Of a DNA stretch of 32,000 nucleotides, positions 6,781 through 29,055 are shown one piece after another. Source of the DNA: Wallemia ichthyophaga EXF-994 (Eukaryota; Fungi; Basidiomycota); assembly GCF_000400465.1 (NCBI RefSeq), contig NW_008806289.1, positions 228,370 to 260,369 on the forward strand, read 5' to 3'. The notes below the pieces were generated by a model. The model did not search any database. It was not told the origin of the DNA and worked only from the letters and a program-made list of their open reading frames with translations. Position numbers and translations under genes: made by a program. Each line of letters opens with the position of its first letter. Positions within the stretch are counted from its first letter, which is position 1.

Positions 6781-9074
6781 TTACATTGATTGCTTGATAA
6801 TTTCCAAACGATTTTGAATCCTATCTAATGCAACGTTTAATTGATCAATCTCCATTTGTGCGTTTGATTGTGTGTGCGTGTGATGTTTGAAAGCATCATG
6901 TACAACACTTCTAATCGTGTCTACTAATAGTGGTTCGTGATTTTGACTTAATGTTGATATTGGCTTGAATGGCGTTAAATTGAAATACGTGTAAGCGTTT
7001 GATATGATTAAAATCAAGATTAAAACATAAAGTGTTTTCGTAAATGATGGTGAAATCGTCAAAGCTCCTAGAGCTGAAAATATTGTCATCGTTAGTCTGA
7101 CTACTTTATTGAATAACTCGAATGTACCATCTAATAAATGCTGTAAGATAGTTGGCAGCATTGAAGTATGTTCCATTGTACTCTTTAAATGACTATCCTC
7201 GACTTTAGCTTTTTCAGCTAATTCCTTTGATCCTTCTTTTTCTTCACGAGCTTTCTCAGGGGTTATTGCATTAGTATCCGTAAATTCATTTGCATGCTCT
7301 TCAATATATTTACGCATTGCTGACTCTAAAGCGCGATGATAAGATTTCTGACCTTCGATTGCTGATCTTTCAATAACACCTGAAAAATAGTGAGTCGAGT
7401 AGATTTTCAAACATCCAGGACCCACCCTTTAAAAAACTTCTACCAGTCCATTCAACCTTTGTGGAGACAATAACATGAGAATTGTTGTTAGTTGCCCATG
7501 AAATTGCTGTTCTAGTACGAACAACAAAAGAATTACCAGAAGGTACCTCTGGAGTACGGGTGGACGTGAGTACAAGAACATGATCATCAAAATCGACATG
7601 CTCATTTTCATCATCCAATACACATTTCGTTGACTTTGGACCGACACCTACTGTCAAAGGTTTGATGTAAGTGATTGTTCTACTAAGTTTAGAGCTATCA
7701 GCTTTGGGTTGCCAGTCAGATATTTGAATTTCTGTCAGGTCTTGAGTCGACATAAAGTCTTTAATAAAGAAGCTTGTAAACATAAGATTGTAAAGCTTTT
7801 CAGGTGTTGCTGGGAGTGTAGTATCCATTGCAACCTCTGGGAAGTTTACAGAAGGGTCAATCTTTGTAGGCCTGTGAATAGTTGGTGGAGGTCTTTGTGT
7901 CGCTTGTCTAGGTACAGAAGGACGAGCATTTCTAGATTGCTTTCCACCTTTCTCTTTGTGTTTACGACTGGATTTGCTTAATGAAGTTGAGGCTGATGTG
8001 GCAGAGCTTTCTGCAGATGTATCAGAGTCTTCTTGCGAGCTTCCTTGATTAATTAGATGGGCGCTTTCGTGAGACTCTTCCGATACTGGTATGGTGGGGT
8101 GAGACAACCTCCAGATGTTTAATATCACATCGTAAACAGTGTCTCTGGATAAAAACGAAGCGAAGACATACTATTGCGCGACAGTTAGCGTTGTCTCATC
8201 TTCATAATTGTAAGCCAACCTTTGCGCGCAATGTAGAAATTTGGATTGCGTTTGGAATGACAAACGCAGTCATCTTCTTCTCGATTGCAACCATTTCAGA
8301 GAAAGGAACAGCAAACTGTATCTTATTAAAAGATGAATAGAGATGAGTGAAACTACCTACGCTGGTAACCCAACCAAATATGTTTGCGTTAAAGGAGATG
8401 TGATTTTCTGATATGTAAAGACGCCCTTGAATAAGTATTTCACGCTGTAAAGCACAACCATAATCTTCAATGAGGTAATCTTGCTCAGGAATATTAGGAA
8501 AGAGTTGGTGAAAGTCAGCATTTCTGCGTGAACTTGCGACAGCGAAACCGGTGATACCTTCGCCGAAGTAATCATTTAACTCTAAAGACTGGCTGTCAAC
8601 ATCTGAAGAATGTCTATCATTTAAAGCCAAGCCAATCTGAGGATCTGTTTCATTTAAAGAGTTACGGGAGGTATCGATTGAGTTCCTGGTTGAAGGGCTA
8701 ATTTGAGATTTATCAGGAGTAGAATGACCGCTAGGAGAAACATCACGTAAAGAATCAGGAATATGATTAGAATCTGAGTAATTCCTTTTACGTGTATTGT
8801 TTGATCTAAGTGATGAATTTGACTGCGACTTTTTGTGATTGAATTCATCAAGGCTGAGGCTGCCATCACCGATACTCAAAGGTAAAGATCTCCTTTCAAG
8901 CGTAGGTGTCTGAGTATCATCATCCAGCTGAGGCTGCTGCTTATCAGGCATATCAAGCTTTGGTAGATCATCATATTGAGATAAAGGCTGATTCATGACC
9001 ATAAGATTATGCCTATTATTCGTAGATTCCTCTTTGTTCTCCTTTTTCTTATATTTGTTTAGAATTGAACTCAT
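6781..9074 (-). CDS. GRAM + VASt/StART-like domain sterol transfer protein (LAM/Ltc/Ysp2 family)
   Basis: GRAM domain (LIEDYGCALQREILIQGRLYISENHISFNANIFGW, IEKKMTAFVIPNAIQI, YVFASFLSRDTVYD), VASt domain (STRTPEVPSGNSFVVRTR), C-terminal TM segment and coiled coil. Ser-rich N-terminus and three introns. Confidence 0.88.
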
Positions 9075-16055: not shown

Positions 16056-18383
16056 TCAGAATGGATCTATAACACAGCTTTCCTCGCCATTATAGACTTC
16101 AAAAGAAGTAACTTTATCCGTAACTTTATCTATAGATGCATATATTGCCTGTGTATCAAATTCAGAATGTGTATAAAATCAAAGCCAATCCGCTCACATT
16201 AGTCAAGTCCCTAGAAAGCTCCTCGTTGCCGTAGTTGAAAGGTGACAGCATGATGCCTGATTTGGTCTCCAAGAATAGCGTGCTTGGAACATCGCTTGCC
16301 CTTGGAAGATGATGCATTCCAACATTTGCCCAAAGAACTAAGTCTTCTTGTACGATATTCTCATCATTTAAGAATGTATTGAAATCGACAGGTGGCTTCA
16401 TCATATTAGCAATGATTTGGAGCCCATACAGTCAACTCACATTGTTTGGTAGGTTCATGTTATACATCGAGCTAGCACTCTCTTCATCCTCGTTGTATTT
16501 GGTCACGTAGACGTGCTGTCTACTGAACACAGCATTCCGCTTCATACGTGACTGTGTGTCTGGCGTATCATGGATAACGGGAGTTGATGGCATTATACGA
16601 TAGGCTGGATTATAGCCATACTGAGTTTTCTTATCCAGGTTCGAAAGGAGCAGCCAGTGATCGTAGTTGTTTGACCAATTCATACCTTTCTCTTGTTCTA
16701 TGTTAGATGTGTTGATCACCTTGGACTCATAAGCATCTTCATCCTCATCTTGCCAAAAGAATTTTGTATTTTGTACGTCTATGGACTTTTCCACCAAGGT
16801 GTTGCTCTCACCGAGAATGTCCAAGTCGAATTTGAATAGGATAACGTGGTCGTGAATGTTTCCGAAGGTTGTATCAGAGACTTGAGTGCCAAACTTATCG
16901 CCACCCCTCGAGCTGTGTGTCTGAAGAAGATAGCCGGAGGCTGATGCTGATGCTTCAATTGTACCGTCCGGCATGAGTGCATAGTCTATCATATAATCAT
17001 AGTTTCCAGGTGTGCTTATGCTTCTGATGACCAGTTTTGAGGCTTTGTTAGAAGAGGCGTCGTTCACTCCATAATGCCTAGAAATTGGCTGGAGAAGAGG
17101 CATCTCGAAGATGCAAATAGAGTTGGGAGTTGTAACATCATGTGTACCATTCCAATAGTGCGTTGCTAAATATGTGGCTTCGTCGGCACAGTCATAGCCT
17201 TTGAGAAGAGGAGTGAGCTTCTCACCCAACCCGATACCTCTATCAAGGAGAAAAGAATTTGCATTTGTAGGAGTATTTGCTGAGTAATGAGATACTGCTT
17301 CTTGTAGACTAATTTCGTACGCTATTCTAACACTATTAAAGCGCAAGTCGTGGATGCTAACACCAGTCTCTGGGTTGTGAGCGAAAAAAAAGTCCCAATT
17401 GAGCCATGAAACGTGGTTCTGCTTATCATCAAGCCTGTATCTGAGCCCCTGTTTTGACAAACTGATAGGCGCAGGACGTTCCTCGAGATCTCTGACTGGT
17501 ACATCAGGGCGACGTCGTGACCAGTGTGCTAAATCTTTTTCGGTGAATTGAGGGATGAAATTCGCAACTTCGCCTTTCTCATAGTCTTCTGCGAAAGATT
17601 TCAAGCTTCTCCACACTTTATCGCCGTACACGATCTTTAAAACACTCCATTCAGAGAACTTTTGACCAGAGATATCTATTAAAATGTGGAATCCAGTGAA
17701 GCCACCCCACTAAGTCCTTGTCAGTATAACTTTTTGTGTGAATATTTGTTGTCACTTACGAAGGCAGAATCTTCTGGGGTTTGTGAAAGCTCTAACCATC
17801 TCAGACGCTTATCGCTGTCAAGGTTGAGGCGCTCATCTAAGTACATGTACTCTTCCAAGCTCCATGGCTTGCCAAGCAAGTCTTCAATTATCGCTGAAAT
17901 TGGGGCGAGAGCATAATACACGAAAACCTTCTCTAACATTTTATCCTTGTGTGCCTTGGTTCTGCGGCTATTGTGAGGGATAGGTGGAGTGTTGGTTGAG
18001 TGTACCTGGACGTTGTCTTGATTAAGTGGGCCAACGGTGTATGACCTGATGGAAGGGTCGCTTTCCGAACCGTGTACAATGATAGCTTTAGCATATCTAT
18101 CTGGTTTGGAACCGTTGAAGTTCAAGTATTCTAATGTTTCATATTTCTTTGGTGAGTTGAGTGTGAGGAGTTCGACGTAGTTATCAGCAGGGCCAGCATC
18201 TTCCAAACTGGTGAGATTGAATTTGTCATAGATAAATTCATATGCTTGATTGAACTCTTCTGATGTGAGTTGATTGAAAGGGTTTTCCTTGACATTCTTC
18301 GTCTCCTCGAATGTTGAGAATGGTGGATTGTAAGAAAGTGAAAGCGAGATGCAGCCAAGTATAACCAAAGCCACAGATTTCAT
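16056..18383 (-). CDS. Copper-containing amine oxidase, probably secreted
   Basis: Signal-peptide-like MKSVALVILGCISLSLS, topaquinone motif GNYDY, Cu ligands HDH and GMHHLP, and catalytic-base region FLLDRG. Three introns. The last exon ends CVIDPF-stop at 16056. Confidence 0.92.
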
Positions 18384-18551
18384 CCTCAGCGTTTCTCAAC
18401 AAAATGTTCATTCTTCGTTAGGATATTCAAACGCTGGGAATTTAGTCTACGTGTTTGAAATCTGCATTCCTGTGACAAAGCAGTAGAAATTGTGTGAAAA
18501 AAATTGAATTTTTGATTGGGTTTGACATATTGATTTATATCTTTTGCCGTC

Positions 18552-19810
18552 ATGATCTTCTCATCAAACAACAGGAGCCGAGATATACGCACACTGGGAT
18601 TTCTGTCGTTGGCATGTTTTCTGGTGCGATCTATTTAAATTGCTATTTCTAGGATAACGAATAATTCTAGTATGGCTGGTCGGTCTCTTCGATTGGTAGT
18701 GTGCAAAACGCAGCTATATGTCAAACTGGGGATGTTACGCGTAATAGATTAGAATGCTTGAATATTTCAGACACAAGCTACTCATTTGCAGTTGGTCCTT
18801 TCTTTGCTGCAGGCGGTTTGGTCGGTAGCTTGGTGATTTCACCTTATCTGGGCAATCGTGTGGGCTGGACAAACCTTTCCCGCGTAGCATTCAGCGGATA
18901 TTTTAGCTTGATTGGTCAAGTAATCATCGCAATTACCCCATTTGCATCCCTTCTCTTCGTTGGCAGGCTGCTCTCTGGAATCAGCGCGGGCGTTGCAATC
19001 GTTGCCGTTCCAATTGAGCTCGAGAGGATGAAGGACAGCGAGGACAGCTACCTAGGACTGCTCACACAAATCTCGATTGTCACTGGTCTCACCGTCTCTC
19101 AAGCGTTAAGTTTGGCCCTTGCCAAGCCGACATACTGGCGTCTTATGCCGATGATTGCAGGACTGATATCAGGTATCCAATTGCTTCTACACAGAAGATA
19201 CTCTCCGTTGCCAACAGAGGATTACGAGGAGAATGATGAAGTTGTGCCTCAATTATCAATGCTTGATGTCTTAAAAGACAGGGAAATGAGACCAAAGCTC
19301 ATTAAAGCAGTCGTATTACTTGCATCTCAGCAGTTCGCTGCTATAAACATCATACTATTCTACTCCAAAATGATCTTTAACAGTGACCTAATCAGCATGC
19401 TGATAACATTGGTGAATTTTTTCATGACATTTCTCACGTTACTCATACTAAATATGCTCAGCAAGAGGTCATTATTTAACGTAAGCTATTTTGGTGCAAT
19501 TGTATCACTGGGGATACTATCATTGTCTCTAGAGCGTAATTACATGGTGACGAGTATAGTAATATACGTCTACATAGCCAGCTACTCGATCGGATTGGGA
19601 CCACTACCATTTGATATTCTCGGGCAGCTCTCCACAGAAGAAACAAAAAATTCGTTATCAAGCATTGGGTTGAGTGTGAACTGGATAACAAACATGATAA
19701 TGTCAGCAGGGTTTTCGATATTGGTTGGTGTGGTGAACAAGAATATAATTTTTGCAATATTCTTTACACTGAATATTATTGTAGCAGTTGCTCTTAATGT
19801 CTTATGGTGA
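18552..19810 (+). CDS. MFS sugar-porter family transporter (resembles vacuolar Vps73/YBR241C type)
   Basis: Exon 1 18552-18623, intron 18624-18670, then YGWSVSSIG. Sugar-porter motifs VGRLLSGISAG, QQFAAINIILFYS and YSIGLGPLPF, with about 12 hydrophobic segments. Confidence 0.88.
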
Positions 19811-20720
19811 CGACCTGAACGATGGCTTAGATTATAACTTTGATAACATTGAGTCTGAAAATGAAGGCAGCTTCGTAGATGAGGAGTTCGCTGCTGGTGA
19901 TGATAATGAGGAATCGCTACAGCTAGCTACTGGGCAGAAGAGAGTGAGGGATGATGTAGAGCAGCCCCAGCAGAAGAAGAAGAAGACTAAAAAGACCAAG
20001 CATTGGTCCAGTCAAGTGCCTCAAGTAGCGAAATCTGCGCAGTCGAGTCAATACGACTTTTTAAAAGATCAGCTTAAGTCTGTTTATGGCAAATTATCCG
20101 ATATTGAGATCGAGGAGAGGGTTATTCCAGGTGAGCTATTCTAAATAGCCTATAAACCGACTAACCTTGGATGAAAATTAGAGACAGCGATTGATGCTAC
20201 ACACGAATACAGTCTTCCTAGGAATAAGGATACTATTACAGACTTTATAAGCACACAGTTTAGCAATTTGAAGGATTCGCTTAGTAAGCCAAACAAGCAG
20301 AAGGGTAGTCCGAGATTGCTTGTTATATGCTCATCTGCGATTCGTTGCGCTGATGTTGTTCGTTCACTCAAACAGCTCAATCCATCAAAGGACATTCCAA
20401 TTGCCAAGTTATTTGCTAAGCATATAAAACTGCATGAGCAGAAGGATTTCTTGCAGTCGAATCAGACTGTTATCGCAGTCGCAACACCAAATCGAGCAAA
20501 ATCACTTATAGAGGATGGCACATTGAATACAAAGTACCTAAGTTTGATATTACTTGATTCTAGTTATACAGATGATAAGCAGCGGACATTGTTTGATGTA
20601 CCAGAGACCAAAACTCAGCTATTCGATCTACTCAATTTGAAAAGCATATATGAGAGGTTCAAGGGAGAAATTGGCGGACAAGGAGACAAAGGACGTAAGA
20701 CAGCGTTGTGTTTATTTTAA
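19797..20720 (+). CDS. CMS1: Cms1/CMSS1 ribosome biogenesis factor (helicase-like, catalytically degenerate)
   Basis: The N-terminus MSYGDDLNDGLDYNFD resembles yeast Cms1 as I recall it. Also GSPRLLVICSSAIRCADVVR, AKLFAKHIKL, VATPNR and LDSSYTDDKQRTLFD. Intron starts at 20131. Confidence 0.85.
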
Positions 20721-25067: not shown

Positions 25068-27962
25068 TTAGATATTCTTCTCTAACCACTGCTCAACATC
25101 CTTCTTGTCTCTGGCTAACCATTGAGAGTTACCCTTGACAGCATCGAGGCCTTGGTTGAGCGAGGAAGAGTACTTGCTTGTGTCTCTGTGTTTAAAGAAC
25201 TCTTCAACCTCGTTAACGTCGTTTGGTTGAGCAAGACCATCGAATGAGAAACTAATTAGTCTACCAAGTGAGAAATTACCTTCCAATCTCTTCTCGAGCT
25301 TATTAAGGTTAGCCTTTGTGTATTCCCATAATTTACGACGTGAGATAGGGTTGTTGCGCAATGCTACGTATGGGTACATTAAGTCTCTGTTGATTAGGTG
25401 GTTAGTTGGTGTATAAAATATTCCATCATCACTCACTGATTCTTGAAGCCGTGTTCAATAAAGTCAAAGGTCTTTTCAATGAGTTCTTCATGCTTTGTTG
25501 ACCCTAATGCCAACATCGCAGCAATCTTGTGCATTGGAGTTGGTGGGTTAGGGTTTTTAACAATTTCGAGACATTTGCTCCATTCAGCTTCACCACCGTG
25601 TTTGACAGCTTGTGCGTAGATAACCCTGAGCAAGTCGTTTGGAATGAGAGAGTCGTCGTCCTTTTCAAGTAATGGTTGGAAGCGTCTCTTTATTTCCTGA
25701 ACCACAGCTTTATCATTAGCAGCAGCAGCAGATGCAATCGACAATTCTCTTAATTGAAGAACATCTGGAGAGTCACCCTCTTTATTGTCAAATCCAACTT
25801 GTTTAACAAGTGGGGAAAATAATTTGCGTCTGAGAGCGTCAATCTTTTCTCTAACTGATAAGCTTTCTTCACACCAGACACTAGAAAGGTTAGCTAAGCT
25901 TGTAGCCATTGATGACCATACAAGGTACTCCTTCTCGTTCTTGAGTTGACTAATGAAACCCAAAGCTCCAGATGTTGGGCCATTACCAGCCTTGGCTAAA
26001 ACGAAAGCGTCGTTCACTAAACCAATTCTGTCATTGAGTGAGAATGACGAGTCTGACTTTGACGCTTCAATGCCAAGCTTAGCTAAGCGTTCAGGGGAAT
26101 ATAAGACTCTGTAAACACCAGCAGTTTCCGCGTTGAGTTTCCAGTTTGAGCTTGATACGTCGGATAAAGCAAACTCGGCTTGACGCTTGTTCAATGCAAC
26201 AGTTTTGTCGATATGATCACCTTGACGAATGAACAATGGAACGTGCCATTCAGTTTCATTCTCTTCAGCAGTCGGCTTACCAGTGCTCAAGAATCTGTCT
26301 TGACGAACTTGAATACCATTTTGACTTTCGTTGACAGTGAGGACAGGGAAACCTTGCTTGAGTGTCCAAGGATCCATGATAGCTTGTACGTCGATTCCAG
26401 CTGCTTCAGCGATACCGTTCCAAAGGTCTTGGGTTTCAGCGTTGCCTGTGATGTGTGAGGGTAAATTGGTGGATGAAAAATAACTCACCATAAAGGTGCT
26501 TCTTGAGATAGATTGAAACCCCTTTCAAGAAGGTTTCCTCACCGACCATGTTTGAAAGCATGCGAAGGACAGAACCACCCTTGGAGTAAGAGATGGCGTC
26601 GAAGATTTGGTTGATCGTAGCAGGATCTTTAACAGGAACTTGAATAGGGTGAGATGATTTAAGTGCATCCAAATCAAGTGCTCTGTGGAGGTGTTGAGTG
26701 ATAAATTCACTGTAGACCTTCCATTCAGGTCTGATTCTATCAATGACGATAATTTCACCGACCAAGGTCGCGAAAGCTTCGTTTAACCAAAGACCGTGCC
26801 AATCTGCCATAGTAACAACATTACCGAACCATTGGTGTGAAACTTCATGTGATTGAACACCGACGACTCTCTTTTCAGCATCCAAACCAGACAACTTATC
26901 ATCATAAAGGTAAACCGAAGTCCTACCGGTAATCAAACCCCAGTTCTCCATTGCACCTGCGTCGAAATCATTTGCAACCAAAGTGTCTAACTTTGGTAAT
27001 GGGTATTCAATGTCGAAAATTTTCTCATAGAGAGGTAATACTTGAGACTTTGCATCTAAACCAAGTTTGGCTTGATTGATAAGGTCTGGGGTAGCGTAGA
27101 TTCTTAAAGGTCTAACTTTACCAGAGATAGGGGACTTGTAGGAGGATTCGAGGTGCTTGAAGTGACCGTTGGCCCAAGCAACGAGGTAAGAAGAGATGAG
27201 GGGAGTCTTTTCAAACTTTGTGACGACCCACTCGTCTGGGTTAGTGGATCCAGAGTGTTTCGAGTAGTTGAAAGTGTCAGAAGTAGCTGGTGAAGAGTGA
27301 ATTGGAGGCATATTTGACAAAGCTACCGTGTCTTTTCTGTGAATGATAGAAATGTCGTAAGTAGCTTTAAGGATAGGCTCATCAAGGCAGGGGAAAGATT
27401 TACGAGCAGCGGTTGGTTCATGCTGAGTGAGAGCATAGTAGATATCCTTATCGTCTTGCTTGTAAGAAGATCTATAATAGCCCATCATGCTATCGTCTAA
27501 GGTGGAGTTGAAAGAGATGGACAGGGTTACGTCATCACCTTGATTCAAGTTGAAGGGAAGGGAGAGGTTCAAGCGCTCTAACTTTTCATCAAATGAGTGA
27601 TCAGGGGTTATAGATTGAGACTGTTTGATTGAATTGGTGTATAGATTGATGTAGTGTATCTTTATGTTCTTATGAGAGTGCAAGCTAATCAAATCAGTGG
27701 ATTGCTTCACTTGGAATTGAATATCCACTAATCCTTCGTAATTACAATCAACCAAATCAGATTTTAATTTTAAATCGTAATTTATCGGCTTTAATGATTT
27801 TGGCAGTCTAAACTCTGACATGATTGTTTTGGTTGAAGAGGCGTTGAGGAGGTGCTGGTGATGCTTGACATGTGAGCAGCAAAAGTGGAGCTGCCTGCGA
27901 TTGAAATTAGATTTTAATTTTAACCTAAAATGATTCCCCAGTGCTCTCCTCAGCGGCAACAT
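25068..27962 (-). CDS. M1 family aminopeptidase (Ape2/puromycin-sensitive type)
   Basis: TQHEPTAARKSFPC, GAMENWG, HEVSHQWFGN...WLNEAF and DAISYSKG motifs plus an ERAP1-like C-terminal region. Two introns. In-frame ATGs at 27962 and 27821. Confidence 0.95.
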
Positions 27963-27979
27963 TGGAGGAGTGATTTGAG

Positions 27980-29055
27980 ATGAATTTTGATTTGTTTGAT
28001 TGTAAAAAACTGAATTTCGTCTTGAGGAGAATTGTTTGGTGCGTTTGAATTTGTTTGATTTTGTTATCTTAACCAAGCAAAGGTCTCCAAGTGGCAGATA
28101 TCTAGTCACACAGGATGATGACCATTCTTTGAATATTTTTGAGCTACTTAATCATCGTATAGAGCTGACCAATAAGCTCAAATCTTCCACTCCAATTATC
28201 AATTTCTTTATTCACTCAATTAACTTCTACTACACGGACCAATTACCTATTTTCTTATCTACGAGGGACAAACCTTTGCAATTATTGAATGGCTTGAATG
28301 GCGCAATACACTCCAGTTACAATTTAATAAAGAACGATGCTTTCTTATCTCCGTTCGACTTGTTTCAATTGGGTGATTCTCTGTTTTGTTCTTCAAAATC
28401 TTCAATCTACAAATTCAACATAAACAACTCTAACGATTTTGAATGTTTTAACCTCAAACAGTCTCAATCTGGTATAATTTCTTCCATTGACTTTAACAGC
28501 CTTTACGTCGCATCCGGTGACTTATCAAACAATCTAGCTATCTACACTTTAGATTTTGACCTAGTTTTGCTGCTGACTGATCTTCCTCAATCCATTATCC
28601 AGTTGAAGTGGCTGTCTGAGAGTTTAATTATCATCAACTTTCGACATTTTGACTACTTATACATCTACGATATAAACACACCTTCAGCTCCTTTAAACTA
28701 CTTATCTAGACCTTCGAATACTAATCAAAACTTCTACTTTGACCTCTATTACAACTGGCTAATTTCAGGTGACAAGCTGGGTAATATATCTTTCTTCAAC
28801 TTATCAGATCTCACTTTAGATGGTTCTTTATTCCAACCATCACATAGTTTGCGCTTATCATCAGACTCTATCAATTCTATCTCTCATCATCCTCATTTAC
28901 CACTAATATCACTTACATCAAATTCAAGAAAATTTTTATATAACACATCCGACTCATCAGACACATCAGATTCAGATAATGACTCCATCAATCAAGTTGA
29001 ACAATTCTTATCTTTTAACCTATTAATCTTCAATCTATCACCACCCCTTCAATAA
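27980..29055 (+). CDS. WD40 protein, TCAB1/WRAP53/Swt21-like
   Basis: ATG 27980 and intron 28039-28082 give RRIVWSPSG. STRDKPLQL, QSGIISSIDF and NTNQNFYFD resemble TCAB1-family blocks. Confidence 0.65.

Follow-up and report, generated by a model that had tools for sequence, protein, structure and literature searches.

Introduction

Viral termination-reinitiation takes place where a stop codon and a start codon overlap, as at the TURBS of caliciviruses and at M1/BM2 of influenza B. In these viruses an ORF begins a few bases before the preceding one, on the same strand, has reached its stop codon. Coupling in bacterial operons can have a similar geometry, with an ATG inside the end of the preceding ORF. 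Compacted eukaryotic genomes, which include those of nucleomorphs and of microsporidia (Encephalitozoon cuniculi and Antonospora locustae), combine extreme gene density with spacers of tens of bases or less. PMC3629993, citing Williams et al. (2005, PNAS), describes microsporidian transcripts whose start lies in the gene upstream or whose end lies in the gene downstream. Expression in such genomes still proceeds by ordinary monocistronic translation. In Agaricomycetes, read-through transcripts join tandem genes that are also transcribed independently, and interference with the second gene of such a pair is possible (Gordon et al. 2015, PMC4503453). Only ORFs that do not overlap were admitted to that study, and the conservation that it reported declines outside the Agaricomycetes.

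Wallemia genomes measure 9.6–9.8 Mb, are about three quarters coding, and hold 514–538 genes per Mb (PMC3849046). We analysed a 32-kb stretch of the Wallemia ichthyophaga genome (the window, 32,000 nt), in which the end of a major facilitator (MFS) transporter gene overlaps the start of CMS1 by 14 nt on the same strand.

The pair shares with the compacted genomes their extreme gene density and very short spacers, and its transcripts may likewise extend into the neighbouring gene, at the start or at the end, with ordinary monocistronic translation. Unlike them, it belongs to a xerophilic/halophilic basidiomycete that lives freely and has normal introns, neither an intracellular parasite nor an endosymbiont remnant, and here it is the coding sequences themselves that overlap, a state conserved between species. 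As in the Agaricomycete read-through transcripts, tandem same-strand genes of a basidiomycete appear on one RNA, though for Wallemia this contiguity derives from short reads only. With viral termination-reinitiation the pair shares the position of the start codon a few bases upstream of the preceding stop. Unlike the viral cases, it has a long upstream ORF with no TGGGA motif or structure upstream of the junction, its close relatives have spacers, and the locus is a nuclear, intron-bearing gene pair. The likeness to bacterial operons is one of geometry only; there is no Shine-Dalgarno logic, and because the spliceosomal introns of both genes are absent from RNA, they are not a bacterial-type coupled pair.

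A preliminary description of this DNA, made from the sequence, had presented such an arrangement as typical of prokaryotes or viruses. The overlap is real, but this framing was overstated: the host is an intron-bearing, extremely gene-dense eukaryote, and in a genome that combines spliceosomal introns with such density overlapping transcription units are expected. A literature search found no paper that discusses the MFS/CMS1 overlap. The pair is a new conserved example, from a free-living basidiomycete, of a known kind of overlapping unit, and not a new kind of system.

Results

The two genes and their junction

The features of the locus, in window coordinates, are as follows.

18552..18623, + strand: exon 1 of the MFS (Sugar_tr-like) gene, 24 codons, start ATG at 18552, upstream in-frame TGA at 18531; the N-terminus aligns with the intron-free P0002 of contig L003 and with W. 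mellicola P0003
18624..18670, + strand: MFS intron, 47 nt, GTGCGA...TCTAG; the homologous 46-nt intron is exactly missing from the RNA-derived contig L006
18671..19810, + strand: MFS exon 2 including the stop TGA (19808–19810); the C-terminus, LNVxW followed by the stop, falls at the same alignment position in all relatives
19797..19810, + strand: overlap ATGTCTTATGGTGA, 14 nt, comprising CMS1 codons 1–5 (M S Y G D, the fifth codon only begun) and the last MFS codons with their TGA
19797..20130, + strand: CMS1 exon 1, start ATG at 19797
20131..20181, + strand: CMS1 intron, 51 nt, GTGAGC...CTAAC...TAG; the homologous 46-nt intron is missing from the RNA-derived L006
20182..20720, + strand: CMS1 exon 2, stop TAA at 20718–20720

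At the junction (19790–19815) the MFS frame reads GCT CTT AAT GTC TTA TGG TGA, with its stop at 19808–19810, and the CMS1 frame reads ATG TCT TAT GGT GAC GAC, with its ATG at 19797–19799. The earlier claim that the MFS stop lies 14 nt inside CMS1 on the same strand is therefore exact, both frames being read directly. The gene identities hold as well, on the Pfam matches given below.

The MFS product of 403 aa comes from the sole GT..AG model with an open frame. It matches Pfam Sugar_tr (PF00083) with 114.1 bits against a cut-off of 22.3, and the match ends at profile position 430 of 452. A Kyte-Doolittle scan finds about 11–12 hydrophobic segments, of which the last covers residues 383–401 of 403. 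This bears out the earlier remark that the transporter ends after its last TM helix without a cytosolic tail, and the same is seen in relatives that lack the overlap. Sugar porters carry signature motifs: GRR/K after TM2, PESPR after TM6, and PETKG after TM12. Read by eye, the MFS sequence has GNRVGW in place of GRR/K, lacks PESPR, and stops before the position of PETKG. As judged from its sequence, this MFS protein is a member of a divergent, tail-less sugar-porter subgroup. It is unusually short for a relative of the sugar porters, with a short central loop and no tails. Its closest named relative, 75% identical, comes from W. mellicola; beyond Wallemia-like sequences the search found only one distant metagenomic relative and a weak tick match. 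The first intron of the gene measures 47 nt in the window and 46 nt in W. mellicola, and contig L003 (668–760, against window 18552–18700) lacks it. Since L003 is genomic, this intron is present in some members of the group and absent in others.

CMS1 encodes 290 aa. Exon 2 matches Pfam PF14617 (CMS1, a subunit of the U3-containing 90S pre-ribosome, and so a ribosome-biogenesis gene) with 130.6 bits against a cut-off of 35; the match of exon 1 is weak and covers profile positions 16–83. The protein is collinear over its full length with 'Protein CMS1' of Naganishia, Tuber and Lachnellula and with other basidiomycete homologues, including the N-terminal GDDLxD motif. Its N-terminus, M-S-x-G-D-D-L-N-D, aligns with the GDDLDD-type start of CMS1 in other Basidiomycota, in agreement with the earlier view that this start is credible. 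The frame is closed upstream by an in-frame TAG at 19782; as the 290 residues hold no other Met, 19797 is the only possible ATG start. The context of this ATG is poor, with T at −3.

Conservation of the overlap in other Wallemia assemblies

The preliminary description had proposed conservation in related genomes as a check, and the overlap is indeed present in the independent contigs L001, L004, L006/L008, L007 and L002. The window, L002 and the W. mellicola group (L001, L004, L006, L007) share one general form of the interlock, ATGTCnnnTGGTGA. Its W. mellicola form, ATGTCAAATGGTGA, occurs in SPRB01000041 (L001), in two further W. mellicola-group contigs (L004, L007) and in L006/L008, and a third lineage, represented by L002, has ATGTCAGTTGGTGA. 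Variation is confined to the three middle bases, which leaves one free residue in each protein (Y/V/N in CMS1 and L/S/K in MFS).

Synonymous sites are saturated between the lineages that bear the overlap (pS 0.74–0.79). For pairs with an estimable dS, dN/dS is 0.07–0.08 for MFS and 0.03–0.07 for CMS1. These low ratios at saturated synonymous sites indicate that both are working genes and that the overlap is long-lived. Judged from substitution patterns, then, the comparison shows the 14-nt interlock to consist of two real, conserved reading frames under purifying selection.

The same ratios bear on a different view of the locus, in which the MFS gene is a decaying remnant that now serves only as the promoter or 5′ leader of CMS1, leaving the overlap without coding meaning. 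A short product (403 aa) that lacks GRR/K, PESPR, PETKG and a cytosolic tail might be expected of such a remnant. We consider this view highly improbable in light of an MFS dN/dS of 0.07–0.08 at saturated dS, a frame that is open in every lineage, an intron that is spliced in RNA, and an MFS homologue of the same architecture in the distant relative L005, at 39% identity.

Two relatives keep the order MFS then CMS1 with a spacer between the genes. The spacer is 53 nt in L003 (73% identity, with a higher G+C) and 178 nt in L005 (39% identity). In both, MFS ends with its own stop at the same alignment position as in the overlap lineages. The tail-less C-terminus thus predates the overlap, since it is found at this position where there is none. 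Provided that L003 and L005 branch outside the overlap lineages, the overlap is probably the derived endpoint of compaction, from 178 to 53 to −14 nt; their outside position was judged from lower sequence identity alone, without a tree, and the direction of change rests on these two relatives.

An origin by duplication, in which the L003 MFS end and CMS1 start would be copies and an ancestral overlap would have been resolved, was considered and set aside: their local alignment scored 16, where shuffled sequences averaged 18, which is not significant. The regions compared were L003 1875–1903 and 1943–1970. In its second frame, the CMS1 5′ flank of L003 reads S-L-N-V-C-R-stop, which resembles the end of the L003 MFS (L-L-N-Y-Y-W-stop) and that of the window MFS (A-L-N-V-L-W-stop), with no significant nucleotide similarity. 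The L003 spacer (1904–1956) also holds an upstream ORF of 16 codons, MYDKWDYNSQMPQRVS, whose TAA shares one base with the CMS1 ATG (TAATG). This ORF may be due to chance or may be a small regulatory uORF. A search for more lineages in JGI metagenomes, by a protein-pattern scan and a degenerate DNA pattern, found none.

An RNA-derived contig and the public gene models

A 6.8-kb contig from the Logan assembly of run SRR23314750 (L006, the same as L008) matches the W. mellicola genome at 93–96% identity along most of its length. Missing from it are six segments of 43–50 nt, each with GT...AG borders on the strand of its own gene, among them the MFS and CMS1 introns. Because six introns with canonical borders are missing, from genes on both strands, RNA must have been the source of the contig. 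Between the MFS and CMS1 introns it follows the genome without a break; no segment near the junction is therefore spliced out, and the overlap is covered by RNA. As a de Bruijn contig from a strain of the W. mellicola group, it reads the same whether it came from one dicistronic molecule or from overlapping monocistronic ones.

Positions 1–6800 of L008 run through five genes, namely the cohesin loader (+), a copper amine oxidase (−), MFS (+), CMS1 (+) and the next gene (−), and the introns are gone on either strand. Since the contig is continuous over all five, neighbouring transcripts probably overlap at every border by at least the assembly k-mer, including the 173-nt divergent promoter region.

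One public model does depict the junction otherwise. The GenBank model of the W. mellicola transporter, TIB73168.1 (P0003), evades the overlap: it has a 19-nt intron and ends at a TAA directly adjoining the CMS1 ATG. This model would favour an explanation in which the overlap is an artefact: MFS would use another last exon, CMS1 would start elsewhere, or the junction would be misassembled. We give this explanation very little chance. From the MFS intron to that of CMS1, L006 has no gap, which means that the 19-nt segment is unspliced, and no other last exon of MFS appears in the RNA-derived sequence. The MFS C-terminus (NVxW and stop) is conserved, with the protein's own stop at the same position in L003 and L005. 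For CMS1, a start at a downstream ATG, which the preliminary description had named as a way in which its reading could fail, is precluded by the lack of any alternative ATG: the product has no other Met. An assembly error at the junction, also named there, fares no better, as at least five independent assemblies from different projects have the same junction. The 19-nt intron of TIB73168.1 is an artefact of a gene predictor that forbids overlaps.

In this region of L001 (5199–5235), the intron gives TIB73168.1 a false C-terminus that ends in FLFL and a stop. Another model, EIM23698.1 (P0031, 332 aa), starts at an internal Met and so misses about 70 N-terminal residues, including the first hydrophobic helix. 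The older JGI models EIM23698.1, whose end is NVKW, and EIM23700.1 (293 aa) already imply the overlap. EIM23700.1 falls in the same 90%-identity cluster as P0007, whose start is MSNGDD.

Expression of CMS1

Two mechanisms had been put forward earlier for the expression of CMS1, an internal promoter and reinitiation on a dicistronic mRNA. The indirect evidence leans towards the internal promoter. The microsporidian transcripts and the independently transcribed read-through genes of Agaricomycetes are precedents for it, and the overlap of neighbouring transcripts suggested by L006/L008 points the same way. We think it likely that the locus is an ordinary outcome of compaction, with CMS1 expressed from its own mRNA that starts inside the MFS coding sequence and with transcription units that overlap. 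Compaction would have removed the spacer until MFS and CMS1 interlocked by 14 nt. CMS1 would be translated from its own capped mRNA, with a transcription start in the last ~100–370 nt of the MFS coding sequence, and the MFS mRNA would end within or beyond CMS1. Two-gene read-through RNAs may exist, but CMS1 would not be translated from them. Under this arrangement MFS transcription may interfere with the CMS1 promoter.

The zone in which such a start might lie in the window is the following.

19703..19796, + strand: ATG-free stretch of 94 nt inside the MFS coding sequence, abutting the CMS1 ATG, the proposed zone of CMS1 transcription start and 5′ UTR; TATAAT hexamer at −53

In the window and in L002, the 94 nt before the CMS1 ATG hold no ATG in any frame of the + strand, a run which in the window alone is not significant (chance would give it about 1 time in 5). 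The corresponding run is 370 nt long in the W. mellicola group (L001 4866–5235; L008 5305–5674), the longest such gap in either locus. This ATG-free run fits selection against upstream ATGs in a 5′ UTR, as far as the sequences go. The 370-nt run covers the last third of the MFS coding sequence, and Met residues of the window protein are replaced there. A TATA-like hexamer at about −53 is found in the window, L002 and L006 and is missing in L001.

MFS exon 2 holds 19 ATGs. On a two-gene mRNA, scanning would not reach the CMS1 AUG, because a 403-codon ORF full of AUGs precedes it. In L003 too, most of the CMS1 promoter sequence must lie in the MFS coding sequence, since the spacer is only 53 nt. 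A search for the footprint of a promoter or poly(A) signal at synonymous sites (sliding pS) was uninformative: pS dips only slightly towards the 3′ end of MFS and shows no decrease at the 5′ end of CMS1. Upstream of CMS1, A/T-rich candidates for an RRPE/PAC-like ribosome-biogenesis promoter motif, sought by eye only, were discarded as they are not conserved in L003.

On a dicistronic mRNA, ribosomes would instead stop at the TGA at 19808–19810, and some 40S subunits would backtrack 11 nt and reinitiate at the CMS1 AUG, as happens in some RNA viruses. We regard this as unlikely, even though the stop and start lie within 14 nt in a geometry that is conserved in three lineages, the RNA of L006/L008 is continuous across MFS and CMS1, and multi-gene read-through transcripts are documented in other basidiomycetes (PMC4503453). 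Both L003 (53 nt, a spacer with several ATGs) and L005 (178 nt) keep the pair, so coupling is not a conserved requirement. Eukaryotic ribosomes normally reinitiate very inefficiently after an ORF as long as 403 codons unless a dedicated element lies upstream. The TGGGA motif, which is complementary to 18S rRNA, does not occur within 150 nt upstream of the junction in the window, L001, L002 or L006, and folding gave no excess of RNA structure around the junction (z = 0.17); both results count against reinitiation. Nor would the 370-nt ATG-free run of W. mellicola have a reason if ribosomes arrived from the MFS ORF. Two of the three testable features of viral-type termination-reinitiation were thus not seen, namely TGGGA or structure, and stop/start proximity wherever the pair occurs.

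A more specific version holds that, in lineages of the Wallemia sebi/mellicola type, CMS1 is made from a two-gene mRNA on which ribosomes finish the MFS ORF and reinitiate 11 nt upstream. We consider this distinctly improbable. If true, it would be a conserved cellular termination-reinitiation pair in a free-living fungus, tying the output of a ribosome-biogenesis factor to the translation of a membrane transporter.

Neighbourhood of the locus

The surroundings of the pair are similarly dense. Local G+C in the window is about 41%, and introns are about 50 nt long and have CTAAC as their branch site. Upstream of the MFS ATG, at a distance of 168 nt, lies the start of the divergent copper amine oxidase, and an ORF on the opposite strand ends 35 nt past the CMS1 stop. 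The amine oxidase gene itself (window 16432–18383, −) is ordinary and, like the M1 aminopeptidase gene described below, is divided by short introns into two or three ORFs. In W. mellicola, the annotated spacers around the locus are 142, 174, 0, 30, 19 and 6 nt. Past CMS1 in L001 (6193–7985), successive gaps measure 30 nt in a convergent pair, 19 nt between the start codons of a divergent pair and 6 nt in another convergent pair. If this annotation is correct, it is routine here for a promoter or a 3′ end to lie inside the adjacent gene.

Two other sets of same-strand ORF overlaps in the window were examined as gene overlaps and rejected. Those at 25068–28109 (−) are exons of one M1 aminopeptidase gene. 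Those at 6781–9074 gave VASt and GRAM domain matches, with none for 6781–7425; neither set gave evidence of a further gene overlap. Scans of the whole 32-kb window for tRNA genes and Rfam families found neither.

Discussion

The problem that the MFS/CMS1 locus exposes for annotation is that predictors which bar overlaps invent a 19-nt intron and a wrong C-terminus. For the biology of Wallemia, the locus is a clean, conserved same-strand overlap of coding sequences in a free-living eukaryote and shows how far compaction has gone in this genus. The CMS1 promoter, its 5′ UTR and the MFS 3′ end would all have to sit within coding sequence. The spacer series of 178, 53 and −14 nt offers a small natural model of how an overlap originates, and the locus is a tractable one in which to look for transcriptional interference or, less likely, for a link through reinitiation.
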